Shown here: in pieces, positions 12,336 to 64,000 of the stretch | Layout of the letters: every line of letters starts with the position of its first letter | Numbering within the stretch: the first letter of the stretch is position 1 | Origin: Macrostomum hystrix | Taxonomy: Eukaryota > Animalia > Platyhelminthes | Direction of reading: 5' to 3' | Length of the DNA stretch: 64,000 bases | NCBI GenBank assembly: GCA_950097015.1 | Contig: CATNEN010000012.1 | Coordinates: 124,001-188,000, forward strand | The notes under the pieces: model-generated | Told to the model about the DNA's origin: nothing | Database searches by the model: none | What the model saw: the letters and a program-made list of their open reading frames with translations, nothing else | Program-made: the position numbers and the translations under genes

Positions 12336-13959
12336 TTTTGATCTCGTCAGCCAGGCCACTCTCCCATATTCTTTCCGAGCCGGTTATATTTACTTTATAA
12401 TCAAAATTATGGGCCGCAATCGCAGCAATTGTAAGGCCTGAAGTTGTTGAAGCGATTCGGCTCCCAGAAGGGTGAAAGAGGGAAGCATGAGGTGGCGGCG
12501 GTTGAGGTTAACCCCAGAGTTAATAAAACGGTTCACTGAAGCCTGTTTGACTGAGTGAGGCCAGAACTCGGCGGTGCTAGTTTTTATTATTTGTCAGAAA
12601 TAGTCGAGCGCAGCTGACAAATGACTTGCTTTAGAGTCCCAAACAGCTCTCTCTTCTCTGACACTCAGGAATATCGCTGAAGAGGTTATTACTTCCTCTG
12701 TGACATTGGTGATGGTGGCTGGTCAGCGGTGATTAATGCCAGCTCCGATCGCTCCCTCCCTCTCTGGCTGTCTCTTATTTATTCGATTTGCCTATTTTAG
12801 GCAATCGGAGTTCGAACTAAGAAAATATTCCAACTTATTTATTTCTCTCTTTTTCTTTTTTTTAACGATGATGATTGGCTAAGAAATTAAATAGATTTGA
12901 ACTCTCTTACTGAAAGGTCGAGAGTTCCACGGACTGAACATCCACGCAGCATTTGGACGCACCACGCAATAGCTGCGTCTGGCAATTGGTAGAATTGGTA
13001 GCATGATTTATCGAGGAAACAAGTAGCACGTTTTTAGGGAGTAGTATGATTTATTGAGAGGTAGAACGATTTAGCGAGTGGTTGCATGATTTGTCAAAGG
13101 GGTAGCATAGATTATCTAGGGGGTAGCATTATTTTTAATCAAGATACTGATAAAAACTTTCGTAACTGCACAGATATTTCTATGCAGGTTTAAGCTCCTC
13201 TGAGGGGGGCATAGCTGCTAGTCAAGTATACTAAATATGAATCAATATGTCATAATTCCTTTGTTACCTGCTAAAGGGTTTTATTGATTAATTGTGTTGT
13301 ACCTGTGGTATCGTGGGACACACAATTGGTAAAATAACCAAGACTGGAAACACTAAGACTCAGAAAGGGTTTTACCGGCCTCAACGCTGATGCTTCCTAG
13401 CAGTGGAGCAACCGGTTAGTCAGGCTTGGGATTGCTAAGTTTTCACACAGGGGTTAACTTCAGGGATCCGGAATTCTCTAAGTCCTAGGTAATCTTAGAC
13501 TTTGTTCACAAATAGCGTATCTTCGTCACAAGGACTGGATACAAAACCTTGTAGCAGTGTCTTCAAAATTAAGTTTCTTACTCAAAGCACCAAGGAGGCA
13601 AAAGCCACAAAAGCATGAAGAAAAAAAGAAACTTAGGTGTGCGACTAGAGTACACGAAGTGAAATACCACAATGCTAACACAATCCGGTGTATTCGTCGG
13701 ACTGTGCTCTACTTATAGTAGGAGCATTTGAGCGATGTTCTGCCAGTCTTCTTCCGAACCGAAGCGATTGCACCATGGCGTGCAATGTGACTCAGTGCGC
13801 AGACAGCTGGAACGAGAGAGAGAAAGAGGAGGGGGTGGCGAGCGGAGGTGAGTGTGCACGGGTAACCACAGACCTCCAACTCCCAAGCCCTCCCACAGCA
13901 CCAGGGCAGTGCTGACTCCACAGATTGCATGGAGGCAGCTCAGCAGACTACAGCACATC

Positions 13960-14430
13960 AACTGCTAAAGGGGTTCATTGATTTCCTGCTAAAGGGGTTC
14001 ATTGATTTCCTGCTAAAGGGGTTCATTGATTTCCTGCTAAAGGGGTTCATTGATTTCCTGCTAAAGGGTTCATTGATTAACTGATAAAGGTTCATTGATT
14101 TCTTGCTAAAGGGGTTCATTGATTAACTGCTAAAGGGGTTCATTGATTTCCTGCTAAAGGGGTTCATTGATTTCCTGCTAAAGGGCTCATTGATTAACTG
14201 CTAAAGGGTTCATTGATTAACTGCAAAAAGGGGTTCATTGATTTCCTGCTAAAGGGGTTCATTGATTCATTGATTAACTGCTAAAGGGCTCATTGATTAA
14301 CTGCTGAAGGGGTTCATTGATTAACTGCTAAAGGGGTTCATTGATTTCCTGCTAAAGGGGTTCATTGATTTCCTGCTAAAGGGGTTCATTGATTTCCTGC
14401 TGAAGGGGTTCATTGGTTACCTGCTGAAGG
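13960..14430. repeat. Minisatellite, 24-bp unit CTGCTAAAGGGGTTCATTGATTTC
   Basis: Direct periodicity; a solo degenerate unit also occurs near 13268. Confidence 0.94.
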
Positions 14431-20780: not shown

Positions 20781-23700
20781 CTCGAAGGCCTAGTAAGCCC
20801 TGTTCGAATTGCGAAACGTTGGCGGCTAATGTGGAAGAGCTCAAGCAGACACTAAAGAAAAGTAATGGGCACTCTTTCGTATTTTTTTTACTCATTCGAT
20901 TAGGCTTAGTGTCTGAATTTAAGAGGGGCAGCCGCAGAGTGAAGGCCTGTTGTGTCGCCAAATGATAATAGGTCTGCGGCCTTAGTCAGCCAGAAAGAAT
21001 TTTTTAATTGTGTTTTTTTTTAGTAACACTTACATATTTTTAAAAAAATTCCAGCTTACGATGAGTTTCAAAAGAGTCAGACCGAGTTTAGACAACAGGT
21101 GAGTGAGTTGAATTGATTCTTTTCTTCGGGTGTGCTTTTAATCGACGATAAAAATCTACGATTGGTACTATTTACCAGCGGGGGGTCGGTGGCAGGGCGG
21201 TTAACGCGTTTGCCTCTCGCACCAAGGTCCCTGAGTTCGATTCCGCGGCGAGGCCACATTTATTTGGGGCGCAGCCGCGGAGAGAAGGCTTGGGGGCTTG
21301 TCGTGCAATTTACGCCATTGACGGCCAACCTCCAAGGCGCAGGGAAGTGTACACTGCCTGACGATGAGAAAGTCAGAGCGGATGTACACAGCTGTGTGAA
21401 CGTATGCCTGTGTACGTGTCTGTGTGCGTGTGTGCTCAGGAGTCAGCGGAATGGGCAGAATTGCCTCCTCACTGGCTGCGTGTCTAGTGTCACCAAATGA
21501 TGTGCCACTGCCCGCAGTTCTCCTGCAATTATTATTATTATATACAATTTACCTGCTGCCGTTGTGTCTTTCAGATTGAATCTATGAAGCTGGAATTAAA
21601 AGTGAAGCAGGCGGAGCTGAAGACCCGGGATCAGCGTGAGTAAACATTTTCAAGCAGTCGTTTGTCTATGACCGTAACCAGAAGTGAATAATGGGAATCC
21701 TTTTTACCCTAGTAGCTCACTATAATATGCTTCTAAGAAGCAAGGATTTATTGTTGCACGCTTCAACTGTCTATGGGTAAGAGGCTCCAGTGCCAGTCTG
21801 GCTCTAGTCTGAGTAAACAAAAGCCGACAGTACTCAGGGGGCTGGCTGCTCAGTTTAGGATCCTTGTTTAACTGAGCAGTATTCACAGGATGCTATCTAT
21901 CCATGCTGCTCTATTGTTCATTGGGCGAAGGTGAGTGAGTGATGGTCAACAATACTGAGGTGTGTTTGAGAATTGTTGCTCGAAGACAGATAGGAAAATG
22001 AATTCCGTATTCACATGCGTCTTTGCCACAAACAGAATAGCAAACTCTCTTTTGTGCGTGGCTGTGTATTGCTATTGCCTGGGACTGTGTTGAAGGCAGT
22101 AAGAAAACAAAAATAATATTCTATTTCATTTGAATTGTGTGAAACAGTGCAATATTAGGGATCCATTATCCACGGACCACTGTAGTAGAACTGTAGTATG
22201 ACTGTACTAGAATGGTCCTAACTATTAAAAGGGACATTTCAGCTTAAATTGACATTGCGACGTTGAATGTCAGCTTCAAGAGTGACATCGTGAGAGTAAA
22301 AGTCAGCATTGAGAGTGACATTGCGAGGGGGTGTCATTGTCGAGAGTAAATTGTGAGGGAAATGATAGTATTGAACATGCCGCATTCTTCACTTCCTCGC
22401 AGAGGCGGAGCTGGAGCGTGGCAGAGCAGCCGGGCTCAGGCAGCAGCTGAAAATCAGCCGCATCTACCAGCAGGTGGCGGTCAGCACGTGCGCAGATCTC
22501 GAGAGAGAGAAGCGGGAACTGCGCACCCGAAGCTGCATGATCGTGGACAAGTTGCTGTCCATGCCTGGCCAAGTCGGAGTCGCAGCCTCCGCTCTTGTCG
22601 ACTCTGGCGGCGTTGACGATGGTCTCCTATCCCCGTCTTTGATAAATGTCATTGAGGAGCTAATTGGCGACGATGACGCTGATCAGGACGACTGTTCACC
22701 GACCGGCGGCAATGAAAGCCCCGTGCGTCGACGCAAGCCGTCGCTCCCAACGGAGCCTCAACTGACTGAGCACATGCTGCAGGTGGTTCGACAGAGCTTC
22801 GTCGAGAACTGCCAGAGCAAGGAACCGAAGAGAAATAACAGAAATGAGGAGGAAGACGATAATTTCAGCCTTGAAGTTCCAACTAAGCAGCAGCAAGAGC
22901 AAGAACAAGATGAGGTCTATGAGGTCTTTGATCAAGAATCGCCGAAACCGAAGCCAACTCAATCGGAGTCTGAGCAGCAGCAGCTTCACCTAGAGGATGA
23001 AGAAAATGATGTCTATGAGGAAGCAGAAATCTCGTTGACTGAAGCGTCGCCGGAACCGAAGCCAAGGCTGTCGGAGTCACAGCAGCAGCAGCCAGAGGAA
23101 GAGCCGCAAAAGGAAGAACAAGATGAGGTATTTGAGAAAGCCGAAATCTCAGTGACTGAAGCGTCGCCGAAACCGAAGCCAAGGCTGTCGGAGTCACAGC
23201 AGCAGCAGCAGTCAAAGCCGCCGAAGCTACCAAAGCCAATTCTAAGACAGGCATCAAGGAGGCAGGCGGGCGGAGAACGCAAAGACCTCAGCCTGGTACC
23301 GGAGTCCGAAGAAGAGACGGACAGGCTGGGAGAGAATGAGGCGACTATCCACTTGGGCGAGGAAAATCAGGAAGAGAATGCAGACATCCGAATCGAGCTG
23401 GCAACCAACAATACAGAGCAGCTGGAAAATGTGAGCATGCTCCAAACTTTAATAATAATAGTAATAATAATAATAATTGCAGGAGGGCTGCGGGCAATGG
23501 CACATCATTTGGTGACACTAGACCCGCAACCAGCGAGGAGGCAATTCTGCCCATTCCGCTGACTGCTGAGCACACAAGCACACAGATACCGTACGCAGGC
23601 ACACGCTCACACAGGTGAATATATCCGCCCTGACTTTCTCATCGTCAGGCAGTGTGCACTTACCTGTGCCTTGGAGGTTGGCCGTCAAGGGCGTAAATTG

Positions 23701-24737
23701 CACGACAAGACCCCAAGCCTTCTCTCCGTGGCTGCGCCCCAAATAAATGTGGCCTCGCCGCGGAATCGAACCCAGGGACGTTGGGTGCGAGAGGCAAACG
23801 CGTTAACCGCCCTGCCACCGACCCCCTGCTTCAAGCCTTTTTCCGCGTAAACCCATATATGCATTCATGTTTTTGGTTTCCACGAAATACTTCCAGATTG
23901 GCACCATAGACGACATGCTAGAGGCTCTGCGTCAGGCTTCGCAGACGGCGATCCAACGTGAATGCGGCTGCGACAGACAGCTGGACCTAGCCGTGACTGC
24001 CTTGCTGCGGGTGAAGCGCGGTAAGCCTATAGATTGAGGCGGCGCAAACATGCTACCAATGCCTGCTTGTGCGCATCTGCTTGTTCTTTGTAACTCGAAA
24101 AAACCATATTATTTTGTAGACGCGGAGGAGCACAAACGGCAGCTCAGAGATCTTGATGACCAGATCAACGAGCTGAAAATCAAAGCCTCCCGTCCGCCGC
24201 CTCCGCCGATCGCACCGCCGCCGCCGCCGCCGCCGACGCCGCCGCCAACGCCGTCGTTCCTGAATAAATACAATATTGGAAAGAAAAATCGAAATCGTAA
24301 GCAGGATTTCTTTGAGTTGAGCTACTCTTACTCTTGGAGCTTGTTCTAATCCTATGCACTGTCACTGACCCCCGGGCAGTTCTATTCTATGAACCCCGCG
24401 ATTTTCTGTGAATAAATATTATTTACGATTTCATTGAATAGAAGCATTTTACTCAATACGCGCAGAGCTCGCCAAAGTCTCTTCCTTCGACGAAACTCTA
24501 ATCGAGAGCCTGAAAAACGAGCTGAAAGCGAAACTGAGCGGCGGCTGCAAGGTCCTCCGCCCGACTGTCCCGCGTCACACGCCGCCCTCCGCCGTCGCAA
24601 CCACCGCTGCCGCCGGCGGTGACTCCGAGGTTGACGAGCAGCTGAAGAAGCGAATGGCTAAGATCCGGCATCGGCTGTCGTCCTACCGGCCCGCTCCGGT
24701 GGATGAGCCGCGTGCCATCTTCATGGACCGACTCTAG
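20781..24737 (+). CDS. SHTN1: Shootin-1-like coiled-coil, polyproline and WH2-like protein; start exon not resolved
   Basis: Exons 20781-20861, 21055-21098, 21575-21635, 21889-21930, 22403-23430, 23897-24020, 24120-24296, 24466-24737 (phase-compatible). QLKISRIYQQVAVSTCADLEREKRELRTRSCMI resembles shootin LEIEKTCRESAEALATKLNKENKTLKRISML; coiled coil followed by PPPPPIAPPPPPPP and LKNELKAKLSGGCKVLRP (cf. MMDRIKKGVHLRP). Confidence 0.65.
21178..21542 (+). mobile_element. tRNA-derived SINE, copy 1 (full length)
   Basis: A-box-like TGGCAGGGCGG, B-box GAGTTCGATTCC, conserved body, (ATT)n tail, imperfect TSD TACTATTTACCAGC/TACAATTTACCTGC. Confidence 0.88.
23450..23826 (-). mobile_element. tRNA-derived SINE, copy 2 (full length)
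   Basis: Reverse complement of copy 1 with high identity, including the (AAT)n tail at the left end. Confidence 0.88.
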
Positions 24738-26317: not shown

Positions 26318-29300
26318 TCAAATTTTCTTCTTTCCTTTAAAAGACTTCGTGGCTTCTTTATTGTTCGCTTCCTCTCCCATCTCCTGCAACTTTGGTCGCC
26401 TGCCAACCTGAAAGTGCAGTAACAAGGCCGAGTCCTTGGCAACCAGTCGCATCATGTCCAAGGACAGGTAGGACCAGGCGTCTCGAGTCTCATTGAAGGC
26501 TGTGACCAAGCCGAAGCGAATGCTGGGCATGATGAGGCTGGCTTGACGTGCCAGTTGAAAGTCGACGCTGCCAGGCGAATAGACTGGCTTCTTCTGGCTA
26601 GAGTGGAAAAACCTCACCAACTGCTTGGCCTGCAACAGGGTGTGCAACAGGCAGTCAGTCAGGCGTTCAATTATAGCGGCGTGCTGATCTCGCCGACTTT
26701 CCAACACTTTGTGCACTTCGACGTGGGCGAATCGTCGCCTACCGGTGCGCACCCGCCGCAGCAGGGCGTCGATTGCGTCCTGCTCCCTGCAGGCCAAGTT
26801 CAGCAGGCAGTTCGCGATGTTGCGCTGGTCACGTGCTCTTCGGGAAAGCAACACTTGGTTTAATTAGCGTTTAACCTGGCTCAATTTTCCTAAATAGTTC
26901 CAAATTAGCTAATCTTATACTTTAAAACTGCGTGCCTGGTCAATGAAAATTAGGACTCGTGCCGCTCAGGATCCTCATTGGGATCTGTATAATCTCACAG
27001 TCAGGATCCTCATTGGGATCTGTATAATCTCACAGTCAGGATCCTCATTGGGATCTGTATAATCTCACAGTCAGGATCCTCATTGGGATCAGAAGACCCA
27101 GGACAGGTTGCGAACTACCAACCTGGGATCCTGAAGTTTCAGTTCTTCGGCATTGAAAAAGAATTTCGCCCGGATGTAGACTTCGAAAGCTTGGATGCAC
27201 TGCGCCAGACTGCGCTTTCGTTCCAATGCGAACAACAGAATGCGAAGCGGCTCTGAGCAATACCAGTCACTCACATTTAGCTTAGATTTCTTCCCACTCG
27301 AATTGGAGGCCTGCGAAAAAAAATTTTTTGACCTTTGCTTATTTGAACGCCAAGGCAAAGCCTAAAGGGATCTTGTAAGGGATTTCCTAGAAAGACCACG
27401 TGATATCTCAAATACCCAGAGGGTCGGTGACAGGGCGGTTAACGCGTTTGCCTCTCGCAATAAGGTCCCTGAGCTCGATTCCGCGGCGAGACCACATTCA
27501 TTTGGGGCGCAGCCGCGGAGAGAAGGCTTGGGGGCTTGTCGTGCAATTTACGCCCTTGAGGGCCAACCTCCAAGGCACAGTGAGAGTGTACACTGCCTGA
27601 CGATGAGAGAGATTGTGTCTGTGGCCACAGCCCTCCTGCCAAAAATAATATTATGAGTAATAATAATGAGAAGATGGTTCTGAGCACCCACACACACACC
27701 AGACACGTGCGCTGGAGCACATGGCAGAGTGCATCACTTCACTGGTGAACGAACTGTGGAAAATCACTCACTGGGCCTTCACCCGACTGCCTTACCCATC
27801 AGTGCATCGACGAACAATGGAACCTTTGCTAGAAGGTTGGACGCGATAATTGAAAATGATTCGAAAGGCAACCAGTCCTACTGAATCACCTGTTGAATCC
27901 TGGCGTTGTTATTCCGATTGTCCTTGGTCTTCGGATCCATCGCCGCCTGCATCATCAGCTGCGGATTGACGCCGTCGACCTCAGCTTGCCGTTTTAGCTC
28001 TTTCACAGCCTGCAATGTCACCTTCAGCTGCTTATATTGGTCATACTGGTCAGCCAGATCCAGTAGGTTGGGCACGCCAATCATCCGGAGATCCGGCGAC
28101 AGGTGCTCAACGTCGATTAGGCCGAAAGGCGTTGGCGTCGCGTTGTTCCGGTGAGAAATTACGAGCGACAAAGGCAGGCGAGAACTGCGATACTCTGTAG
28201 ACCCAATGACGCTGGCCACGAGCCGGTGGATGGGATAGAATGATCTGCTGGCCAGCATGTGCAGGGCAATGTCCAGCCAATCGCGGAAATACAACGCCCG
28301 ACGCTCGTATCGCCGTCTGATGGGCAGCGCCATCGCTTCACCAGACTGCCAGCCAGCTGCCAACAGAGGCGAAATCGCGGTGAAGAACTCGCGCCGAATC
28401 GCCACTAGGAAGGCTGGGAAGGCATGAAAGTCGCCGTCATTCAGGCTCATGATGTGGGAAGCGTACTGAACCTCGTTGGCATCTGCGATGCCCTGTCCGT
28501 CTGTCTCGGTCAGGCTTAGCAGCAGTTCAGTGACTTCCCTCTGGAACAGTGGGACATGAGAAATTCGAGATTATTTCAATTGCTTTTCAATGCTTTCGCA
28601 CTACTATGAGTAATAGATCTCTTATTGTGCAAGTATAAATTCTCAGATATCACGACAAAATTAGCGTTTGCTCACACTGCCCTGGAATTTCACGCACATG
28701 GGGTGTAAATACACTGCCCTGGAATTTCACGCACATGGGGTGTAAATACACTGCCCTGGAATTTCACGCACATGGGGTGTAAATACACTGCCCTGGAATT
28801 TCACGCACATGGGGTGTAAATACACTGCCCTGGAATTTCACGCACATGGGGTGTAAATACACTGCCCTGGAATTTCACGCACATGACCTTACATGTTAGC
28901 AGCGAATGGTTTGAATAGTTAAAAAAGCTCGATTGCATACTCACAGCTCTCATGTACAGACTGATGCCCAAAGCCGTGAGGTACAGCACGCACTTGCAGT
29001 GATACATAGGCGAGTCCATCTTGCCTTCCTTGAAGTACAACGCAGGATCGTCCAACACTTGAAAATATTTTCCGCGCAGGAAGTCTGGTGAGATTTCAAA
29101 TTTGCGTCGGACCGCATCGGAGTCGTTGGCCCGTATGCGGCTGATAAGCCAGAGGTTACTGGGATGCAGATGGTGCAGGAACCGGGGCACAGTGTAGTAG
29201 TAACAAGTGTTCAGTGAGTTCAGTGGGTCCAGAAACGCTGGTGGATTTGGTGCCTTGACCTTCTGTAAGCGCTCCTTCATGTTTTCATAACAAAAAATTG

Positions 29301-32294: not shown

Positions 32295-35200
32295 TCAAAC
32301 GAAGTGATTCTTGGAAAAGCGCAAGCGGTGCAGATTCTCTGGCTCGGAGGAGCTGTGCCACATGTGACTGGTCTCCTGCGGAGTTGAATGTAATTTTTCC
32401 GCTTAGCTTTGTTCAGCAGGCTAAGATTTATTAGCATAATATAAACTTGTGGGCTGATGTGAGACCCGTCTTACCCTGTTTAGCAGGGCCGCGTTGATCT
32501 GGCTGAACTCGGGCCTGTACAGGGGGTCGTGGCACCAGCACTCGGCGATTAGGTTCTGAAGTTCGGCATTTAGTTGTGAGTAATTTGCTTGATCATAAAA
32601 TTTGAAAAAAGGCTTCTGTTTAACAATGCCTTTGAGGGGCAAGAGCGATTAACGCGTATGCCTCTCGCGTCAAGGTCCTTGAGCTCGTTCCATGGCGAGG
32701 CCTCATTTATTTGGGGCGCAGCCGCGGAGAGAAGGCTTGGGGGCTTGTTGTGCAATTTACACTGCCTGACGATGAGGGAGTCACGGAATATGTGCACACC
32801 AGTGTGAGCGTGTGCCTGCGTGCAGCATCTGTGTGCAATTGTGCTCAGGAGTCAGCGAGATGGGCAGAATTGCCTCCTCGCTGGCTGCGGGTCTACTGTC
32901 ACTAAATGATGTGCCCGCAGCCCTCCTGTAAAATAAGAATTTGTTCCTATTAACAACTTCTTCAAAGTTGAAAAATTCCTCACCTTGATGGCATCAGATA
33001 CACGCAGATCGTGGACGCTGTCCCGCTTGCCCTGGCAGATGTTCTCCATGTACTGGCGTCTGTCACACTTGGCATAGGGATACCGGCCGCTGCACACCTC
33101 GAACATTATTACACTGCAAAATGGGAAGTTTTTCATAGGAGACTGATTTTTGCAATGCCTTTCTTTAGTCGATAGTCAGACGATGACACTCCCTTCTCAG
33201 CCACCTCACTGCTCCAGCCACCTCACTCTTCCAGCCACCTCACTCCTCCAGCCACCTCACTCCTCTAGCCACCTCACTCCTCCAGCCACCTCACTCCTCC
33301 AGCCACCTCACTCCTCCAGCCACCTCACTCCTCCAGCCACCCCACTCCTCCAGCCACCTCACTTCTCCAGCTACGCCAATCCAATCAGCCAATAGAAATT
33401 TGAGACAACGTCCCAGACGGGCTGTAAAAAAATGCATAATCTATACCTAAATGCAAATACATCAGAGGCGGTAGTGAACGCCGAGTCCGGTATAGAGGAG
33501 GTCTTGTCGGCCAGCTGGGTGAGAATCTCAGGCGGAGTGTACCAAACTAGCGAGGCTGGCACGACTAAATAGCCCGGTCTGCAATGCGCAAAGAGAGTAA
33601 TTAATAAGAGCTTGTTATAAATCACAAAGAATAGAACTTTATCATTGTACTTGATCATCGAAATGTGCTAATTGAGAGATAGCGCACGGCTTCGCGCACT
33701 CGTGTCCTAGGCGTTGCTGCACTCAAAAGCCGTGCTTCTATCATATTGACGAACATAGTTTGGACACTCAGCATAATCGATAACCAATGGGTGGCTTGGA
33801 CCATAGACAACTGATGGTTGGATAATGGTATTTTCGTAAACAAACGCTGACTGGAGTATTATTGCACGCTGTCTATGGTAAATCCTGGCATTATTTTGTC
33901 TCAGCTAGTGTCCAAACCATTTGTCAATGGTAGATTTACGCACTAGGAAGCCTAGCATAAGTGCATTGATTTATGACCAAGTGTGTGTGCGCAAGACCAG
34001 CTCCTTCGGCCCATAGACAATACCCGTCTGGGATTTACTGCATAGTAGCTCAGAAGAGGGATGGCACGGATTTACCGCACAGTTGCGGAATTTACTGCAC
34101 ACTTCAATCTATTTCTTTGATGGCCTTTGGGCCATAAACTATACACGAGCTTGAGACGTTTACGCACACTTGGTTATATGTCAATGAAGTTAGAGTAAGC
34201 AGTCAGCGGAAAGCTTTGTCGCACTAAAAAAACTAAAGTACGAGTACTTTAAAATTCGTTAGAGAATGCTATTGGCAGTAGTAGCCGATTAGCCTGGGAC
34301 AGAAAATCTAGACACTGTCTATGGCACAAAGTCTTTTCATCGGCCGTTAAAATTCTTTAGGCTTAAAAGGCTTAAAAGCCTTTCGCATCAACAAACTGAG
34401 AATTTTCCTATTTAAAGTACGACATCCAAGGCTAGATGGATCACCAGCGGTTGGAAACACCCAGGCGCCGATTTGAGTACCCCAATTCCAGCTACTCTCA
34501 CAGTCAACATAAACAGCAGCTGCAACAAGGTGGCGATGGCGAAATCATTGCTTGCAGCCCGAAGATTTCAGGCGCCGCAGTCGCATCAACCCCACTGGCT
34601 GACGCTGTGTTGAACATCGACCAGAATGGTGACTGCATGGAGGGTGGCCTGCCAGGCATTGCGATCATTCCTAACGATTGGTGGAAGACTCTGCTGGCCT
34701 TGATCTGTACAGCCAGCGGTATGCTACTCATGGCGATCAGCTTGTCCTACGTGCACGATTATGTGCCTCAGCGCACGCCTCTGCCAGATATAACTTTAAA
34801 AATGTTGCCACGCATCGATTGGGCAATCAATGCTTGCGAGGCCCTGCTACTGATGAACATAGGCATTGCGCTGGTCATCTGCCTGGCTCACCGATACCGT
34901 TGGGTTTTGCTCCGCCGCGCATTCTTCATGCTGGCCATTGTTTTCGTCTACCGCTCGGTGACCATCGCCGTAACAGTCATGCCAGATCCGGATTCGCGTC
35001 GCTTCTGCGAGCCGCGCTCAAACCGGAGCCACAGCTTCTCTGAGATAGCCGACCGCGTTACCCGCATCGCCATGGGCGGCGGCTTCTCCGTCAGCAACAC
35101 GCACAGTATCTGCGGAGACTCGATCTTCTCTGGCCACACGGCCAGCCTGACATTGTCCTACCTCACTATTAAGGAGTACACTCCCGCCTCCGCCAGTCCG

Positions 35201-47954: not shown

Positions 47955-48295
47955 TGTGGTAGCAAAGTGGTTAGCACATTTGCCTCTTGCACCACTGTCC
48001 CTAAGTTCAATTACACAGTGAGGCCACATTTATTTGGGGCACCCCCAAGAAAGAGAGAAGGCTTGGGGGCTTGTCATGCAATTTATGCCCTTGAGGGCCA
48101 ATCTCCATGGCACTTTGAAGTGTTAATTGCCTGATAATGAGAAAGTCAAGGCATGTACTCAATCTGTGAGAGTATGTGCCTATATATAATAATATTTGTG
48201 TCTGTGTGTGCTCAGGAGTCAGCAAAATGGGCAAAATTGCCTGCAGCCCTTCTGTAAATTACTATTACTTTTATTATTATTACTATTATTACTAG
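47955..48295 (+). mobile_element. tRNA-derived SINE, copy 5 (CpG-decayed)
   Basis: Colinear with copy 1 including the ATT tail, but contains no CpG. Confidence 0.82.
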
Positions 48296-51611: not shown

Positions 51612-54600
51612 TCAGAACAGGCCGACACTCTTCTTGGCGGTGGTCTGCTTCCACTCTGGCAGAGTGGCAAACTTCTGGTACGGCATGCCAAATACTCGCT
51701 TGAATTCTTCCTCGCTCAGATGGCGCTAAAATATGGATTTTGGCGATGAAATTCCTGTGCTGCAAGTTCAACTTTAATTCGATCCTTCACAGTCCTCACC
51801 TCCTTCTCCTGGGGCTTGACCCCATCCGGGCAGGCCTCGCGCAGCTGCGAGTAAGGAAACTTCTTGTACTCGGCGAAGCTGCGCGGCGCTCGCGGACCCC
51901 CGTTGGCCGCCTCGCCGATGTCCAAGCGGTCAAGAGCGCGGGCTGACTGCACCTCCCGCTTCATCTGCTCGTAGGTCTTGGCAGACTGTTAGAATTTAGA
52001 GTTCGTTTCATCGTTTGGTTTGATTTGCAGTCTCAAAGCGCCTTCTCTTTCTGACTTCTCAGTTAAATGATGCTCTATAATTGTTTCAATTCTAATCATT
52101 TCTTATTATTTTGAACGCATTTAGTTCTATTAGATATTTGATGTCCGCAGCAATCAATACTTCGTGATGTCCTTGGAAGTGCTTGGCTTCCAATCAATAG
52201 TTGACAGAACCAATGTCACTTAACAAAACTTGACAGCGGCTTCATAAAAATTACAATGTTGCAAGGAAGCAAGTCTGACAGTGAATGTCCTGAACTTACT
52301 ACTAGCAAATGACAGGACTTAGTATTAATTGTATACTCACCGACCACATGCCGTAGTCCCAGGAGGGAAAGAAGCCGATGAACACTGGCGGCTCGTGGCC
52401 CTGGCGCACACGATAGATCGGCGTGTCCTCCGGGTCACGTGACCGGCTGGGGTCAGTTCGCAGATACTCGACGGCGGCCTGCATTGCCTCGCGTCGCTCT
52501 GTCTCGTTGGACTCCTTACCGATCCACATGTAGATCTCGTCGTGAACATCCAGCAGCATCACGTCCTCTTCGATGAGGTCGTCCTGGAAAGGTTCATGTT
52601 TTAAGTTCTAGACCCACTACGATCAGTCTTGCAGAGACGTATGCAAACTTGCTAACGGAAGAATATCACAAGTTTTACGAATATTCAAAATACATCCCAC
52701 AAATGTTTAGTCATGAAGTCCAATTTGTTAGAGCTCATGATTTCTAATTGACTTAATAAACCTTGAAATTAAAAGGTTTACCTCTATCACCGTGAGCCAG
52801 AACCTCCTTACAATAGAGGCGCTCATTCATGATACGAGCAGATTTTTCTCTAGCATGAGGTGGAGGGAAGGCTACGTGTTGATAAAATAAGTCATTATAC
52901 GCAAAATAATCAAACCTGGACAAAGTCTGCGATTTCCTCTGCGGTGAAATAGCCCTTGGCGTTGCTGCACTGGAATAGGCGCGAAGCAAACGTGCTGTTC
53001 GACTCCTGCAGGCGCTTGTCGTTCTGGTAGGGCCCTCTGCACAATTGATTAATGGATGCAACGGTGCATGCTACAGAAGCACTTGAAACGTCAGTGCATA
53101 TTGGTTTGGAGTTTGCGCAAGATTTACTTTGGTACGGGAGCCGTGTAAACGAGTCTCAGGGCGTCAAAACTGGTGTGCACTGGCATGAGCTATTGAGCTT
53201 ATATAGAACAAACTTTAAAAAATCCATGGAAATTTTCGCAGTCTATTCAATCTACGTAATGCATGACTCACTTTCCGCCCAAAAGTTGCCAGAACTGGTC
53301 AGTCTCCTGGCCCTCGCACAGCAGGCAGTACTCCCGGCGGGACACCGCCTTGGCCACCTCCTTAGCCGCCTCACGCTCGTCGCCAGTTGTGCCCTGTAAA
53401 TACGAGCTAGCTAGTTGCAGCGGACTGTAAGCAGACGCCCCATTACGCGGACCACTGAGCACACACGCACACGGATACGTATGCCTGTTTGGGCACAGGT
53501 ACATAGGCCCAAAATGTTTCATCATCAGGCAGTGTATATTCCCTCTGTCTTGGGCTGCGCTCCAAATTATTATAGCCTCGCTGCGAATTCGAGCTCAGTG
53601 TCAGGGACTCTAAGAGTGTAAGAGTCAGGCACGTTTCCGCTCCGTCACTTAACCCTTTAAAATGGCCACGGCCATATAAAATTAAAATTAATTTAATAAT
53701 ATGAATTAAATCTAAAATGGATTTTATATTCATTCTTGACCTTGATCGCTAAGCGGAACATAATTTATCTCGTAGTTTTATAGCTATACCAAAGATGTTA
53801 GTCTGATTCATATAAGCCAATGCCTCACCTTGCCGCACCAGATAAACACCAGCTGCTTGGAAACCAGTACAAAGGTATCGTTAGAATTCAGCGAGCCGGT
53901 GGTCTTCGGCACCTGTTCAGCCTTCGCGTTGATGGCGTTGGTGCCGTGCACGCGTAGCAGGAAGGTGTCGCCGACTAGCTGGTCACGCTCCTCTTTGCCC
54001 CAGCCAGCCTTGCCGCCCTGCAGATTGCAAAGCGAACATATTACATGTACGCTTACTACGAAACGCATACGACAGCCCTAATCCCAATCATTTTACGATT
54101 GATAAAATCCAAACGTACCTCGTAGACAATCATGCGACCTTTGAATAGCGTCAAGAAGTGCAGCGGCTCCTTGCCCTGGACAACGCGCACCTGAACCGCT
54201 GCCCCGCCAAGCCGGTCGTCCAAATTCATCGCATGCAGTGCGGCGGCGCCACGCTCGTCCTGTGACGATTTTCGGCCCTGCAGCAGGACAATGAGATCGA
54301 TTAACAGAAGTAGAGAAGTAAAAGGTGGGAGGAAAATAGCCCTATGACAATTTTTCTGACGTGCCTAGACTGAGAAAGGCAGGGACTTTAAACAACATTT
54401 TTTCAACATTTGGTAACTTTTTGTTGCGCACCTCTTGTACCAATAATCAGGATCTTTGCAAAATCTATAGAAGGTCGACCTATTCAAAGATTCTGAACCA
54501 GCTGATTCTGGTTCTGAACACCAACCAGCAATGCACTTTTAAAAAGCTTTGCTAAGCCTTCAAATTAAATCAGCTTTTCGACCACATTCGACTTAGGCGA

Positions 54601-57600
54601 GCTTATGAAAACCTACGGATGGCATCAGCTGTCAATACGAGCTTACACACTAGGTTACAAATTTCTCCGATCTCGCTTTATTAAGCCCAGAAAAGTACAC
54701 CGGGTCGTTAAGAAAAGTCCACAATCAAGCTAGATTTACCTGCCAAAAATATACTATGTACTGCTCCCTGCCGTTGACCTTGTACGTGTAGAGAACGACG
54801 TAGGAGTCGCCCCCATAGAATTGGCCATGCTGGGATTTGTCCAATGGTACCAGCTCTTTAGCCTGGACGCGCCACACCTGAAGCAAATATGTTAACTTTT
54901 GCCATAGACAATAAATGGATAATTAGAAAAAGGCTCACTTTAACCTATGCTTCTCTGTACATCTAGCTCGTTAAATCAACGCTGCTCACCTCAACTTTGC
55001 CGCTGCCATCGTCAACCATGCGTGTCTCGGCTGCCAACTTGGGGCTCTGGTGCATGCTGGAAGCGTCGAACTGCGTCTGCACCGTCTTGGCTGTTGGCGA
55101 TTGGAAAACCCGCGTTCGGGTGGGACTTGGTGGTTTAACAAACGTATAATGCCTAACTAACACCCACTAATCTTAGAATGTTGGAAAGTGGATGGTGGTA
55201 TTGCTAATGTTAGGACGCTTAGAATACTGGACTAGCTAATTAAAATTTGCAACAGACTCACCAATCTTATTGTTGTTAAACACCTTGCCCGTGTGCTGCG
55301 GTGCTGGCCAAGTCTGGAACAGCTGCTTAAACTGAGCAGTCTCGCAGCCTTCGTTCACCTTGGTGATCTGCACCTGGGCAGCATGCTTTCCCAGCTTCTC
55401 GACAAAGCTCTGCATTCGGGTGTCAGATTTGGTAAAAATATATTAATGAAGATATAACACCTGATTGGAACAAAAGTACAGGCAGTAGCTCAGTCGCAGT
55501 TGTTCCGTACGCATCAACAGACTGCGTAAAACTGTTTAGCCTACGGAAATTGCCGACCGCCAAGCCCCTAACTAATTCATAAAAATCAGTGGGTGAGTGG
55601 CTGAGCAGTTAAAGCGTGCCTCTCGCACCAAGGTCCCTGAGCTGGATTACACGGCGAGGCCACATTTGGGGCGCAGCCACGGAATGCTTGGGGGCTTGTG
55701 CAATTTACACCTTTGTGGGCCAACCTCCAAGACAAAGTGAAAGTGTACACTGCCTGATGATGACAAAGTCAGGACAGATGTACACACCTGTGTGAGCGTG
55801 TGCCTGCGTACAGTATCTGTGTGCGTGTGTGCTCAGCGAGATGGGCAGAGCTGCCTCCTCGCTAGTTGCAGGTCACCAAATGGTGTGAATTGAGACAGTT
55901 AAGAATTGAGAATTGAAATTAAGAAATCCGAATTGAGAAATTGCCAGCAGCCCTCCTGCAGTTATTAGCTATTATATTATGCTGAAAAATTTCATTTTCC
56001 GCTGTTTGGATCAACCATGGGGAAGTAAATTTGTCTTACTCAAGGGCAAAAATGCTTTGCAATCAACTTGCGGCGTCAATTAGGCACATTGTTAGCTCTG
56101 TAGATCCATGAATCAACTCACCATGGCATTGGTCATAGCTGCTCGCTTCTCGTTTCGATTGCTCAACTTGCCGCACCAAACCCACACGCCAAGGTTGGCG
56201 TTGTCAATGATGAAGACATCCTGTGGGTGGGTTTATTCTTTGTTGTATCTTTGTTAATTGTTCTGGCATATACGTTTAACATTTAGCAATCGGTGATGAT
56301 TGCTAGGTTAGTCCTTACCTTGGTGTCCAGCATCGAGTGATGCAACGGGCCTGTGCCAATCTCTACCACCTTCAATGTGCCGCCTTCGTCGGAGCATCTG
56401 TGAGTTGTTATTTTTTAAGTAACGAATATAATTAGTATTATGAACTCGTCGCTTAAATATAAATTTGAAGCATTTGTGTCTGTTGTTCAGCATATTTATA
56501 TATACGAGTAGAATAGTTGCTCAAGTAATAGATTCATTTATACATTTTGATGTGCATTTTCGTGCGTTCTAAAGATGTATCTCGTGAGCCAAATAAAATG
56601 GGTGTTTTTTATTCACATTTTGGCACACAAATACACACGATTGTTATCATTCTTTTATTTTTCATCGGCCCTGAGTGTTAAGTAAAAAATATTTGGCTCG
56701 GTGACTCAATAAACATTAACGCCTCAACAACGTGTTAAACTAATGTAATTTGGCTTCTGCGGGGTGAGGAGTACATGGAGAGGGGTGGTTGGTTGAGTCC
56801 GGGAGTTGGTGTGATTGGCTGGACAGGTTATCGAATGGGCTTAAAGAATGAAGGCTTTAACTGCCAATACTTGGCTAGTATTCACTGAAACTGAAGCTGA
56901 GTTAGCTTTTACATTAGTTTATTAATGCGTGCAAATTTTGAGAAGTTAAGGCGAAAAATTTATTTTGATTTAGATTAGATTATGCGCAAAATGTTCTGCC
57001 ACTTTTGCACAGCTACCTCAGCAGGCGAACTTTTCGCTCGCTAGCCTTCTCGAATTCCACGTCCGACGGGCCAGCGGTGGCAGGCTGGATGCGCCTTCGC
57101 TCCAGCGACAGCCGGCCGCCGCTCTCGAAAGCCTTGCGTGCGTTTGTTGATTTTTAATTATCATGCTTTCAGGGTAGCATGCAGTTTTCATTGCCCTACT
57201 TATAGTAGGCTCGTGCACACTTTTATCGAATATAATATATAACAGGAGAGCACTGCACCTATCTTGCTGAGTGCCTGTGTTGAAAGCCTAACCAAGAACG
57301 ATGTGTTAATCAAAGAATTACACATGATATTAAAATCGTATTACTCCCTACGTGAGCAGACAATCGATTTTCGTGACAAGTGATCGTGATGTTCTACGAT
57401 GCAAAAATGCCGCTGGCGACTGGTTTATTGGCTGAAGTTGTACACGTGCGCGCTGATTGTGTACGCTTATGTAAGCGACTCTATACCTGTACAGCCGGAT
57501 GCTGGCTGCCTGACTACGCTCGAACGCCTCATCGGAGAGGTCAGTCTGTGCCGGTGCGATAATCAGCGACGCAAGCGGCAGGGCGCCGTGGCATTCCCAT

Positions 57601-60600
57601 AGCTGCGAAGTATTTTTGTGGCTTGTTCAACTTGTCTATGGCCTTTCTTCGGTATATGCCGATGTCAGATGAAATGATTCAAACTTAAAGTCAATTTTTC
57701 AATTAGCTAATAGGACTTTGAATTTGCCTTCCCTGCTGTCTCCTGAGCTGTCGCGTCAGAGCTGCGCCATCTCTCTCTCTCTCTCTCTATGTCCTCTCAC
57801 CTGTTTGTGCACCCCAGTCAGGCGGGTCTCCTCGCCCTCCTCCAGCACCAGCAGGTCGGCAGTCGGACGCTCGTCCCGCAGCGCCCTGGCCGCCTCCATG
57901 CCTTTGAGTCGCTCGCGCCTACTCGACTGGGCGCCGTTCCAGACAAATATCAGCCGGCCCTGGTCGCTGATGAACACGTCGCCAGAGTTGAACGAGGACC
58001 ACTCGATGGGCACCTTGGAGTGAGAAAACTCTGGCTTGAGTATCCGTCACACTAACTTCCCTATTGTTGTGAGCGACACTTAAAAGCTCCAGCCCTCCAA
58101 AACGGGCGTGCAATGCTTTATATATTTACTCAATCAATGCATGTACATTAAAGAGGTGTCATTGGCATGTACATTGCGCAATCACCATTAAGCGATACTA
58201 GCAATCGACCCACAGCACCAATATTAAAGTTCGCTACGTCACAACACCTATCTGCCAATGCCGTTCAGTTGGTTGTCTCTCCCTCCAGACTATTCAATGA
58301 CATGCTGCAACTCAAATCCCATACTCCAAATCCCAAAATTAGTGAGCTGCTGCAACTCTGATACCTTACTCCTAACCAAATGAGCGCACCTCTACAACTC
58401 GTTTGATCCACTGCTTCAATCCTTCGGTTTAAAAAAATCGCAAAATCAAGTGTGGACTCACTTGGCGACAGCGCGGATTCCGCTTGCCCTTGACCTGGTA
58501 AAGCCGCGGCTCGTGCTTGTCGCGGTCCACGTGGCTCAGGCCGGACTTCACGCCGCCCTCCATGTAGCGCACCTGGCTGCCGCGGAAAAGCGCCTGGAAG
58601 CCGGGACTCTCGTTGCCCTCGACCTCGCGGTGCTGCACCGCAGCGCCGCCGCAGAGGTCGTCCAGCTCGACGGCTTTGAAAGCGGCAACCGTGGCTTCGT
58701 CCTGCGAGCAGCCGGAGCCGAGCCAGAAGTGCACGTGCTGCTCTGGCCTAGCCCGGGTCTCACGGCAACTGTACACCAGGTAGGCGTCTCCGCGATAGAA
58801 GCTGCCCCACTGCTGCCGCGGCACCGGCGTCACCTTCATCTCCTGGCGGTCCGGTTTGGGGGGCCATTGGGAGTGAGAAATGAGAAATGAGAACCTGAGA
58901 AATGAGAATTAAGAAATGAGAATCGAGGATTAAGCACTGGGAATTTAGAAATGCGGGCGAGTGGCAGAGAAGTTAACGTGTTCGCCTCTCGCACCAAGGT
59001 CCCTGAGCTCGATTCCGCGGTGAGGCCACATTCATTTGGGGCGCAGCCGCGGAGAGAAGGCTTGGCGGCTTGTCGTGCAATTTACGCCCTTGAGGGTCAA
59101 CCTCCAAGGCACAGTGAGAGTGTACACTGCCTGACGATGAGAACGACTGGGCAGGTGTACACACCTGTGTGAGTGTGTGCTCAGGAGTCAGCAAAAGTGG
59201 CTGAACTGCCTCCTCGCCAGTGTAGCCAATGATGTGCTATCGCCTACAGCCCTCCTACCATTATGATATTATAATGGGAATTGAGGAATTTAGAAGTAAG
59301 AAATGGGACTTAGGAAATGGTAATTGAGAAGTAAAACGTAAATTTAGAAATTATGCATGTAGAATGAACTTTTGTTAAAAAGAAATGTAAATTATTTGGC
59401 ACGAATTGAAATCAGGTTTTTGATGGAATGATGCGTTAAATAATGACAGCTGGAGAATAGCCTCTGCTTGAAGATAACTTTCACATAATCTAACTTTGAA
59501 AAGACATTGAACTAGAATCTCTGAAAGCAATATCACAGTCCCGCCTTTTAGCTAGTCTAGTTTCCGCCTAGAATCCAGCATACGTTCATTGACTCTCCCA
59601 AATGGATGGGGGGCCAACACAGTTCTGTACAGTCTCAGAGTTAGCAGCCGCGGCATGAGCTCTATTGGTGCGAGAATTGCTCCGGTGTGCCTGGCTAAGA
59701 AAATGTTGGGCGTAGCCGCTGAGCCACAATGGGGTCCCTGCCGCAGTGCCCTTCTACTGCTTGGCCTTCCATCGTTAACGGCTTGATCGTGGGAGCTGGC
59801 TCGCGTCGGCCTCCCAGCACTGTAAATTATTTAGGTTCATCCAAGACCACCCCATCCGCCGCCGACCCCTCCGGCCAGGACACACGGCCCGTTCCGGTGT
59901 ATGCGATAGCGAAAGAGAGAGCTAGAAGGACAGAGTTAGAGAGAGAGGAGACCTCTCGGCATGTGAAAATTACAATAACATCAGAGTTAATTCCAAATCT
60001 TAGCCTGGCAGCCCTTCATTCTTAATTCCACCTTTCCTTCCTGTGCTAAACTTGAATCCATGCAGCCACGCCCTTAGCACTGAGAACGATTCTGATGCAG
60101 CTGCTTTTCACTCATTCTATTCAAGATTCGAAATTTATAGTCGATCAGTCCGAGTCAAGTCTTGTCGATTTCACATAATTTTTTGGATTTTAGGCTTTCT
60201 GGGAATGTCTTGCTCAATTGAGATCTCAATCTCTGGTCTTCTGATTAAGACCAGATTTAGCTGTGAAATCTAAACGACCCGGATTAGTTAATCCAGTAAT
60301 TGCAGATGCTCGTGGGATTGAAATCTGCTAGTTTTCCTCGCTGTGATCTTTATAAACGCTGTGCACGTATTCACAATAGAAAGAGGTATTCAAATACCCA
60401 CAATTGATTTTTTTCTGTACACTGCTCAAAATATTCTACCAATCGCCATGAAAATCTAAAACACGGTGCTAAAATTTTAGCCGGGCTAGATATTCAACGA
60501 CTCTCGTCGGGGTGTTGGCAAAACAACGAATAATATAGCCATAGTTTTTCAATTTCATCATGCAACTATGTCGGCTATCAATTTTGACAATTTTAGATTG

Positions 60601-61077
60601 ACAAAGGTGTCATTTTTAACCAATATGGATACGCCATAGAGGTTTTCACACAGCAATGTTAGCTGTCCTTGTCACCAGGGTCTCCGACCCTGGATGTCTG
60701 AATATCTCGACAATACTTACTCGGACAAATTTAAAAGTTAGTTGATCTTAAAGGGCGTAAAATTTTTATTCAGATGGTGGACTTTAGCGAAAATCGGTCT
60801 GGGAGCTGTCGTGAAGTACGCAATGGGTATTTGAAACGTCCCCGTTGTCTTTCCCCAGGGGGAAATAGCCTGGTCTTTCTCCTGTTAAAGAATCTGTCCA
60901 TAAGTTATGAATCCAAAATATCCAAAATAAAACAAAAAAATAAACAGAACGTCTAAAGCGCATCAAACACAGCAGCCGGTCCGGACTCACTTCAACTCGC
61001 CAAACGCAGAAGAAGGGCTTGTTGAGCGGGATGGCCTTAAAGGCCGGATCAACGCTGCCCGCCGGTGGGTTTGTCAT
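51612..61077 (-). CDS. VIL1/AVIL: Villin/advillin: six gelsolin domains plus headpiece (~831 aa)
   Basis: Exons (minus) 61077-60991, 58842-58462, 58013-57801, [57602-57487 or 57132-57017], 56397-56319, 56220-56122, 55409-55262, 55090-54990, 54877-54740, 54277-54119, 54017-53829, 53393-53272, 53036-52916, 52583-52341, 51985-51800, 51725-51612; all phase-compatible. Motifs: [56 protein letters not shown], headpiece [27 protein letters not shown]. Confidence 0.96.
53443..53655 (-). mobile_element. tRNA-derived SINE, copy 6 (old, degenerate)
   Basis: CTGAGCACACACGCACAC, CATCATCAGGCAGTGT and GGCTGCGCTCCAAAT match the reverse complement of the family. Confidence 0.65.
55590..55980 (+). mobile_element. 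tRNA-derived SINE, copy 7
   Basis: Family head and body; a ~55-bp GAGAATT-rich insertion lies near the 3' end. Confidence 0.83.
57017..57132 (-). CDS. Villin alternative exon 4b ([38 protein letters not shown])
   Basis: 116 nt, phase 0 in and phase 2 out, AG/GT flanked, same length and phase as exon 4a (57602-57487); ends in the homologous F-E-x..-I/V-R-L-Y/L motif. Confidence 0.8.
58955..59275 (+). mobile_element. tRNA-derived SINE, copy 8
   Basis: Family head (GTTAACGTGTTCGCCTCTCGCACCAAGGTCCCTGAGCTCGATTCC) and body; GGAATTTAGAA occurs on both flanks. Confidence 0.86.
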
Positions 61078-64000
61078 TTTCACCTGATGCTCCACTGGAA
61101 ATTAATATTGCAAAGTTGTCAAAATAAGTGTTAAAAATCAAAAGAAGGTAAAAACAAAGTGAAAGTTTTATCTTACTCTCGAATTATAGGAAAGATCTGA
61201 AGGTTTTTACACAAGAACCTTTGACAGAGAGATCTTTTAGTAAGGTCAATATTGTGAGGCGAGATTAAAAAACCAAGCAGAAACAAAACCAGAGCGAGAA
61301 AGTGCTCCTAGTACCACTATTGCCACTTCAAGTTTAAAAGAAATTGTGCGACGGAATTGGATTCAAGTCTTTAATACGTTTTGGGTAAGTCGTAGTTGTG
61401 GATGGGCAGTTCTCACAACAGCTCCGTATTCGTTGGCTGGCGGCTCTCTCTCATTTGCCAATGCATAACTATTTCTTCTCGCAGTTTAATGACTGCAGCT
61501 ACCAACTGGTAATTTCCGTTTACACTTCTTTCCGAAGCTAATGGTATAGAACTCTTTGGTATAGTAGAAGACTTGGAAACCGTGAAGGCGCTCAGAGATT
61601 AATTTACTACCTTACGCTCTCACTTTTTTCAAGCAGCTACCTCATTTTGCTCTGACTTACATTTGGCATTATAAATAACATACAAATATATAGAATGACA
61701 ACTGTCTCTATTATATTCACGTGAAAAAGCCAGCTGAAACTTTTAAATAGCTAAATTATTTTTCTTTATATTATATGAGTGCTAAAAAAAACTGTAGATA
61801 ATAAAAAAGTATTTTAATGTGATAGCTTTACATAAAAAATCTTTCCAAAATAACTTTATAATATAAAAAACTAATTAGCACGTGCTCTCTTCATTAGACA
61901 CATCCAATGTGGATCCTGACAATCTGGATATAGTAAAGTACGTAACTTCAAAACAAATAAGCTTATATACAGCCATAAGAAAGAGTTTTGTAACAAATCC
62001 CGATACATCTTTATTTTGGTATCTACTAATGTTCATAGAAAAAAGTTATCTACGTATTTTCAAAGAAAAAGTAATCTTCTTATCTTCATAGAAAAACGAA
62101 ATAACTTTAGTTACTGCAACTGCCGTAGCAAGGCTTTCATTAGCACTTCCGTTTTTTTTACTAAGAAATCGCTTTCAATTCCTGTGTGTGTTGCTGAGAT
62201 GGCCTGTGTAATGCGCAGATTTAATATATAAATTATAAAATATATTTTAAAGTTCAAGCTTAACGCAGAACTTTCAAATTAGTTCCAAAACTCAGTTCGC
62301 GCTGCAGAGCTCAATTTTAACGAATTCACTAATGCGTTTTCAATGTAGCAGCAAGAAGCACTTAATTTCTTAAGCATAATTTGTTTAATTAGCAGAATTA
62401 TATTTTCTCTCATCAAACCAATCGCTGCTATGTGAAATCATTACGCAGTTTCATTAATTTCAAATTTGACAGGTACGGTACCAACCTGTAGCCTCAGAGG
62501 TGGGACACTCTGTCCTCTGTTCTGGGACAATGTAAATGTTAAGATATGTGGTTAAGAAAATAGCAGATGCTCAGTATTATCTTCAGCCTCACAGTCTGTA
62601 GTAAGACTTCGATTTTAGACATTCGCATATTTAAACTGTTTTTATGATGCATTTTCACAATTTATCTACAGTTTTAACACAAGCCTACTACGAGTATTAT
62701 ACAGCAATTATAAGTATATGCCTTGTAAGCTGCTTTATCAATTTTGTTCATCTGTTCAACTAGCTAGCAAAAGATAGGGCCAAGCTAGGCCTAGCTGCAT
62801 TTTCTTTTTTATGTGTAGACATAATTGCTTTGCTCAAGGACAACTACGAGTAGTAGTAGACTCTACTCCTAGGCCTAGTGGTCCTTAGGGTTTGCTATAC
62901 AAATAACTGCAGCAGCTAGTTATTAACTTAGTATTTATCTAATTTAGAGATGGACCTAATGCCATGGGCCATGGCAATGTGTATAATTGGTCTAAATAAA
63001 TAAATAAAGCTAAATATATTAGTGTATTTGTTTCAGAATAGCTAGAAAATCTTGTGTATTGAGTAGCAGCGAAATGGAATTTATTGCAACTAGCAAAAAT
63101 GAATAAAAGCTAAGCCTAAAGTAAAATAGGCCTAGCACAATTCCATTGTTTTTATTTATTTATGCCATTGTGTTCATGGCAAAGCCTAGCACATTGCTTG
63201 TTTTAGGCTTATGGTCTCAGGAGTAAAGTTGAGATCGGCCCTACATCACCAAATAGTTCTAGCATGGACAGAAACCTCAATTCATTTAATCTTGTCTGAA
63301 GATTTTGGCATAACAAAGCTGATAGTTGTCTGATTTGTATAGCTACAAGAATGATAAGCCATAAGGAGAATCTTGATCTGGTAATGTTAGGTAGGAGGGT
63401 AGGAGGTTTCTAACCATATCTACTGAGTGGTGAATAAAGACAAAACCTATGATTCCTACTTTGACCCAGAGACAAAGACAAAGCAGGATAGCTTCACAGT
63501 GTAGGAAATAGATGGTTTAGATCTGGTTAAGTTAGGCCTACCTATGAAAATATTATTGACATATAAGACAGTCATTAAATTTATTTTATTAAAAAGTCCT
63601 TGAGTCACACAGTATCCTTACTAAATGTTAGCAACTTTAGACATCAGAAAACATATTTAATATTTAACTATTGCAAAAACTTAAGTAGATAGATTATGCT
63701 AGGGCCTACACAAGATTCTATGTCAAGCTTATCCAAATGCCATCAATGTGTTCTCTTTTATGCAATACACTAAATGCTGCAAGCTATGTGGTGACTTTGT
63801 AAAAATAGACCTACATTTATGACATGGACAATGCATAGAAATCATGTGTGACCCACTGACATTACTGGTCTGGACATGGTTTAACTTTATCCCATGTTAT
63901 TTTTTACTAATAACTCCTTAAAGAAATCAATATTTGTTATTTTATAAAGCAATAGAACTGTGAAATTTTTTAAGTAGTGCATGTTATTTAAATCTCTTGT

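Follow-up and report, generated by a model that had tools for sequence, protein, structure and literature searches.

A tandem-duplicated alternative exon pair at the V2–V3 connector of a Macrostomum villin gene

We analyzed a 64,000-nucleotide (nt) stretch of the genome of the flatworm Macrostomum hystrix (contig CATNEN010000012.1, forward strand, positions 124,001 to 188,000; hereafter the window). A villin gene occupies 51615..61089 on the minus strand. Between the exon for the core of its second gelsolin repeat (V2) and the exon that starts the third (V3), the gene carries two exons in tandem, exon 4a (57487..57602, minus strand) upstream and exon 4b (57017..57132, minus strand) downstream. 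These are a real and old tandem-duplicated alternative exon pair. The explanation that we favor, and consider likely, is that a single villin exon was duplicated in tandem long ago and that the two copies have been maintained as mutually exclusive alternatives.

The gene has about 16 exons and encodes six gelsolin repeats and a villin headpiece. We used tblastn to map the Macrostomum lignano orthologue (P0152, 837 residues), which consists of six gelsolin stretches and the villin headpiece (VHP) by Pfam, onto the window, and found residues 1–837 to run unbroken. Five exons in the window match the Gelsolin profile (PF00626), and the last exon (51615–51725, minus strand) matches VHP (PF02209) at 2.7e-17 over profile positions 1–36 of 36. 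The nearest relative of exon 2 is a Macrostomum lignano 'HP domain-containing protein' at 314 bits, while further relatives, from insects, molluscs, echinoderms and annelids, are annotated as villin-1 or advillin-like. An insect-like locus, which the AT-rich introns and GC-rich exons had first suggested, was rejected on these protein searches, as the closest sequences are from M. lignano. The best match of the V2–V3 region among solved structures is the villin of Paralvinella sulfincola (9jus, E=5.8e-64). The Pfam matches and the orthologue agree with the preliminary description of this DNA, made from its letters alone, which had identified the gene as a villin and had placed the exon pair at the junction of the second and third repeats.

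Exons 4a and 4b are each 116 nt long, are preceded by AG and followed by GT, are entered in phase 0 and left in phase 2, and lie 354 nt apart. Aligned without gaps, they are identical at 55 of 116 nucleotides and 13 of 38 amino acids, and differ most at positions 11–14 and 30–34. Their local BLOSUM62 score of 48 was reached by none of 20,000 shuffles, for which the maximum was 43. Both are also 51% identical to the downstream exon of a villin paralogue in M. lignano (E=2e-7 and 2e-8). A third copy was sought through the whole gene and none was found, the next best score being 33. The two translations are exactly as first described, as are the equal length, the shared phase and the homology.

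The reading frame enforces a choice between the two exons. In scripted joins, exon 3 followed by 4a, exon 5 and exon 6 remains open, as does the same series with 4b in place of 4a. With both exons included, the frame meets a stop where 4b ends; with both skipped, it meets one in exon 6. As 116 is not divisible by three, double inclusion and double skipping both end in a premature stop, which bears out the earlier proposal that exactly one exon must be used. It had also been noted that 4b is hidden in the list of open reading frames (ORFs) in its correct frame, and indeed the only ORF around 4b is a wrong-frame one at 57018–57218.

We compared these predictions with RNA contigs placed on 55900–58900. 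The contigs come from four public runs (X1–X4) of one study, of unrecorded kind, which were picked for holding exon 4b; contigs drop minor variants. Those of all four runs are clearly spliced RNA, covering 58842–58459, 58010–57801, 57132–57017, 56397–56318 and 56219–56122. Single contigs of X3 and X4 (the longest, from X4, being 3,305 nt) read from 58010..57801 directly into 57132..57017, then into 56397..56318 and on to 56219. The X3 and X4 contigs hold the whole of 4b, and those of X1 and X2 hold part of it, in agreement. The joint 56397|57017 is present in all four runs and 57132 directly abuts 57801 in three contigs. The junctions 57801->57132 and 57017->56397 named in the preliminary description are therefore present exactly, and the flanking exon borders at 57801 and 56397, previously assumed, are confirmed. 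Exon 4b is the main form in the RNA sampled, where 4a can be no more than a minor one. This reverses the earlier view, which took 4a for the default and doubted 4b, since 4b is the exon used both in the RNA and in all annotated M. lignano orthologues. The accompanying suggestion that 4b might be a dead duplicate, absent from reads and unconserved, fails outright, as 4b is present in mRNA and is conserved.

Several observations weigh against productive use of 4a, and so against a maintained pair. None of the four runs gives any depth over 4a, and no transcript, contig or database protein with correctly spliced 4a was found. The downstream exon is likewise the one present in each of the nine full-length or near-full-length M. 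lignano models, those of the orthologue and of the paralogue alike. Queries with 4a peptides of 40 and 140 residues (the latter from the M. lignano protein P0154) came back blank from a protein collection that lacks even 4b fragments, which makes these blanks uninformative. Because the runs were picked for 4b, come from one study and are represented by contigs that lose rare variants, their silence on 4a is weak evidence, and zero depth does not show that 4a is unused. P0154 itself (UniRef A0A1I8GS30; L001 13607–14256) combines exon 4b with a portion of 4a and about 30 nt of intron. We rejected it as evidence of 4a expression and judge it to be a frame-preserving artefact of gene prediction; the transcript-based NCBI models of M. 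lignano omit 4a. No expression data on Mlig008406 or Mlig017793 were found in papers or in the supplements of PMC7336406.

Conservation provides the evidence for 4a. We aligned the window DNA with the M. lignano villin locus (L001), where exons are 77–88% identical and introns are wholly unalignable. In L001, exon 3 ends at about 12958, 4a lies at 13607–13722, 4b lies at 14141–14256 and exon 5 begins at 14745. Exon 4a stands out as an island of alignment at 57607–57482, with 84.9% nucleotide identity, inside an unalignable intron, and the alignment ends no more than 5 nt from the exon borders. This identity is as good as or better than that of the constitutive exons. Exon 4b is 80.3% identical to its M. 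lignano counterpart.

The substitutions in 4a follow the pattern of translated sequence. Between the window and L001 there are 14 synonymous and 5 non-synonymous changes, giving a synonymous rate (dS) of 0.75, a non-synonymous rate (dN) of 0.062 and a dN/dS of 0.08. The deficit of non-synonymous changes has a binomial P=1.8e-5. The corresponding dN/dS for 4b is 0.11, which places both exons under purifying selection. In M. lignano, the paralogous gene (Mlig017793/Mlig027879; loci L002 and L005) keeps the pair and its order, and its upstream copy is 73% identical in protein to 4a of the window, with synonymous sites saturated. Across orthologue and paralogue, dN is 0.20–0.23 for 4a and 0.42–0.45 for 4b, and by this measure 4a is the more conserved exon. 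In five loci, 10 of 10 exon copies are 116 nt long, are flanked by AG and GT and contain no stop. Taken together, these comparisons show that strong protein-level purifying selection has acted on 4a in at least three lineages, that of the window species and, in M. lignano, those of the orthologue and the paralogue. From this selection we infer the use of 4a in mRNA. The conservation in related species that the preliminary description had called for is thus present, both exons being kept in the orthologue and in the paralogue of M. lignano.

The paralogue also bears on the age of the pair. Since a diverged paralogue carries the same 4a/4b arrangement, the sequences place the exon duplication before the villin gene duplication, with both copies kept as coding sequence since then. 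More distant species are represented by full-length villin transcripts from Logan contigs (P0155 and P0163; contigs L003 from SRR18242220 and L004 from SRR22411498), 52% identical over residues 182–330 of P0001, a region that takes in exon 3, exon 4b and the first part of V3. They have one exon at the position of the pair, two residues shorter and a mosaic of 4a-type and 4b-type residues. We were not successful in assigning this single exon to either type because of the mosaic, and it cannot date the duplication.

The conservation of 4a can be set against the possibility that it is a dead duplicated exon that never enters productive mRNA, leaving a single protein made with 4b. The missing RNA coverage in the four runs, the uniform use of the downstream exon in annotated M. 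lignano models and the failure to find 4a peptides in the protein collection would all follow from this. A neutral relic, however, would have decayed as the introns did. Instead, 4a is 85% identical in nucleotide sequence inside introns that cannot be aligned, with the match ending within 5 nt of its borders. Its substitutions (dN/dS 0.08 at a dS of 0.75, P=1.8e-5) are those of a constrained protein, and its length, AG and GT sites and open frame are intact in five loci, including the synonymously saturated paralogue. We therefore consider a dead exon improbable.

Exon 4a could alternatively be an untranslated regulatory 'poison' exon, whose inclusion together with 4b would introduce a stop and reduce the amount of villin. 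Joint inclusion does give a premature stop, and unproductive splicing is a known mode of gene regulation. However, the exon has changed as translated sequence changes, with a dS of 0.75 to L001 and saturation against the paralogue while the amino acids are held. It retains the hallmark residues of the family better than 4b does (the Trp of the FW..LGG motif, the SD..FE[RK] helix and the Tyr before the V3 strand), and the preservation of exactly 116 nt is relevant only for replacing 4b. This explanation is a shade less probable than a dead exon. Least probable of the three, by a small margin, is that 4a ends a short isoform through read-through or alternative polyadenylation, giving a V1–V2-only protein like fragmin or CapG. 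In its favor, the window sequence has no stop in the frame of 4a until about 50 codons past the exon. However, the read-through sequence is unconserved in M. lignano, where the alignment stops 5 nt past the donor, the GT donor is present in five of five loci, and the last residues of 4a encode the first V3 strand, match 4b and the family, and are sensible only if V3 follows.

We used an AlphaFold model of the M. lignano V2–V3 region, built from a 44-sequence alignment and with a predicted local distance difference test (pLDDT) score of 88, to place the exon pair on the protein. By Pfam, exon 3 ends at position 72 of 76 of the Gelsolin profile. The exon-4 residues are model positions 105–142, which comprise the end of the C-terminal V2 helix, an ordered coil, a helix at 128–137 that begins at a conserved Ser-Asp, and the strand at 140–143, the first of V3. 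Together with the Pfam boundaries and the alignment to 9jus, the model indicates that the cassette encodes the V2 tail (the last turn of its short C-terminal helix), the V2–V3 connector and the first V3 strand. The pLDDT of the cassette is about 76–95 per 10-residue block, dropping towards the C-terminus of the segment, which indicates that it is not a floppy linker.

Comparison of the two cassettes with the 44-member alignment reveals what they share. An acidic residue at the SD position is near-universal in the family, and FE[RK] and a hydrophobic-aromatic pair before 'VSD' are widespread; 4a and 4b both retain all three. Exon 4a further retains the family Trp of the FW..LGG motif and the Tyr before the V3 strand, both of which are replaced in 4b. 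The preliminary description had contrasted a hydrophobic 4a with an Arg/Lys-rich 4b. The Arg-rich patch is indeed found in 4b of the orthologue group, but it is absent from the paralogue's 4b, so a simple charge switch is not a conserved feature of the pair.

The gelsolin G2–G3 linker reportedly has a role in pH/Ca2+ insensitivity. The calcium ligands of human gelsolin G2 are G186, D187, E209 and D259 (PMC13013752), and the conserved Asp of the cassette probably corresponds to D259. A caution against our interpretation is that this equivalence is by alignment spacing only, which puts D259 at or next to the conserved Asp. In the structure of Paralvinella villin with actin, V2V3 lies on the side of actin where two longitudinal subunits meet and contributes to placing villin on the filament, with a type II calcium bound in each V domain (PMC12674126).

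Having weighed these alternatives, we propose for the mutually exclusive pair that 4a would replace 4b in a particular cell type or stage, or under a particular condition, to give a second villin isoform, and that the products of double inclusion and double skipping are presumably cleared by nonsense-mediated decay. The two cassettes may tune the packing of V2 against V3 and thereby calcium activation or side-binding to F-actin. The earlier suggestion of a tissue switch between gut and muscle or neurons, with villins that differ in Ca2+, PIP2 or severing properties, is a conjecture. With 354 nt of intron between them, 4a and 4b are too far apart for their exclusion to be steric. We looked for an RNA-pairing selector. 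Inverted repeats around the exons are at chance level (for example, a 12-nt pair at 57468–57479/56448–56459, of which about three are expected by chance), comparison of the exon flanks between the window and M. lignano reveals no conserved elements, and intron–intron duplex energies fall within those of shuffles (z −1.3 to +1.2). As no such selector was found, trans-acting splicing factors presumably determine which exon is used.

A bolder interpretation is that this villin has a V2–V3 connector switch, the first alternative-exon switch in the gelsolin/villin superfamily. It would yield two villins differing in calcium threshold or side-binding, with the more canonical 4a reserved for a rare cell type or state. 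The cassette would be older than the villin gene duplication in Macrostomum, and the swap would take in the probable fourth calcium ligand of V2. We regard this fuller interpretation as tentative and, taken as a whole, rather unlikely.

Tandem-duplicated alternative exons are rare and usually functional, and they flag a part of a protein that is worth having in two versions. The part duplicated here is the villin V2–V3 connector, a segment that gelsolin and villin structures tie to the binding of calcium in domain 2 and to the placement of the protein on actin filaments. Should Macrostomum make both isoforms, it would provide two naturally occurring villins that differ in 38 residues, and since M. 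lignano can be made transgenic, the function of the connector could be tested there. The finding also corrects the M. lignano annotation, in which 4a is unannotated in transcript-based models and mis-merged in one UniProt model.

The neighboring parts of the gene, all on the minus strand, are delimited as follows. Exon 2 (58459..58842), encoding repeat V1, is bounded by RNA contig pieces that stop at 58459 and 58842 and matches Gelsolin at 5.7e-12. Exon 3 (57801..58010), the core of V2, has phase 0 at both ends, is covered by contig pieces in four of four runs and matches Gelsolin profile positions 10–72 of 76. The 198-nt intron between exon 3 and 4a (57603..57800) is unalignable to M. lignano and holds a (GA)n microsatellite at 57761–57800, directly downstream of the exon 3 donor. 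Exon 4a, with its AG/GT flanks, is followed by the unconserved 354-nt intron (57133..57486), which has no significant pairing with neighboring introns. Exon 4b, seen in spliced RNA contigs and conserved in M. lignano as 4a is, is followed by a 619-nt intron (56398..57016), whose CT..AC ends on the plus strand are GT..AG on the gene strand and across which the 56397|57017 joint of the four runs forms. Exon 5 (56318..56397, 80 nt), the start of V3, is defined by contig pieces and joints, and exon 6 (56122..56219) by contig pieces, with a loose end at 56122 that continues into the next exon at about 55412.

Within the intron between exons 2 and 3, a 170-nt stretch at 58077–58247 is matched by contigs of X1, X2 and X4 (344–643 nt, depth 8–11), each with the same 4–5 mismatches and with unlike sequence on both flanks. 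These contigs look like a transcribed copy, from elsewhere, of something that is also present in the villin intron; no second copy of the stretch was found within the window. An interspersed repeat of about 220 nt, with copies 78–93% identical and in both orientations, occurs at 58951–59194, 55591–55803, 21189–21407, 27427–27608, 23599–23818, 47979–48179 and 32634–32815, two of the copies lying in villin introns. It is probably an element like a short interspersed nuclear element (SINE) or a miniature inverted-repeat transposable element (MITE). In M. lignano, the villin gene has Rcd1-like, histone-fold and Mog1-like genes as neighbors (L001 1–2911, 4908–5318 and 24157–26282).

Finally, we compared the pair with known systems. 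Mutually exclusive exons that arose by tandem duplication include the insect myosin heavy chain clusters (PMC2257972), the human tandem duplicated exon substitutions (PMC9741552) and those in a survey of human mutually exclusive exons (PMC5740500). Like these, 4a and 4b are adjacent, equal in length and phase, homologous and old, encode the same structural segment and are subject to a choice enforced by the frame. They differ in gene family and in that only 4b is seen in RNA here, so that exclusive use is half shown. The main text of the two human surveys (PMC9741552, PMC5740500) contains no villin- or gelsolin-family names, and our literature search found no villin or gelsolin with such an exon pair. 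In the annotated isoform sets sampled from five relatives in other phyla, namely a planthopper, two sea stars, a barnacle and Ciona, the variation lies elsewhere in the protein, with no swap at the cassette. Dscam1-type control by docking sites and a selector has the same outcome, one exon chosen from a tandem set, whereas 4a and 4b lack conserved intron elements and have inverted repeats and duplex energies at chance.

Among related proteins, the villin of Paralvinella sulfincola (PDB 9jus/9jw0; PMC12674126) has the same architecture of six gelsolin repeats and a headpiece, but an alternative V2–V3 cassette is not described there. As in gelsolin G2, the cassette spans the segment of human D259, with an Asp at the aligned place in both 4a and 4b; gelsolin, in contrast, has no headpiece and no known alternative exon at this segment. 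The host is a flatworm, and comparison with vertebrate villin is an analogy only. The pair is textbook in its anatomy, and what is new is the gene family and the protein segment in which it occurs.

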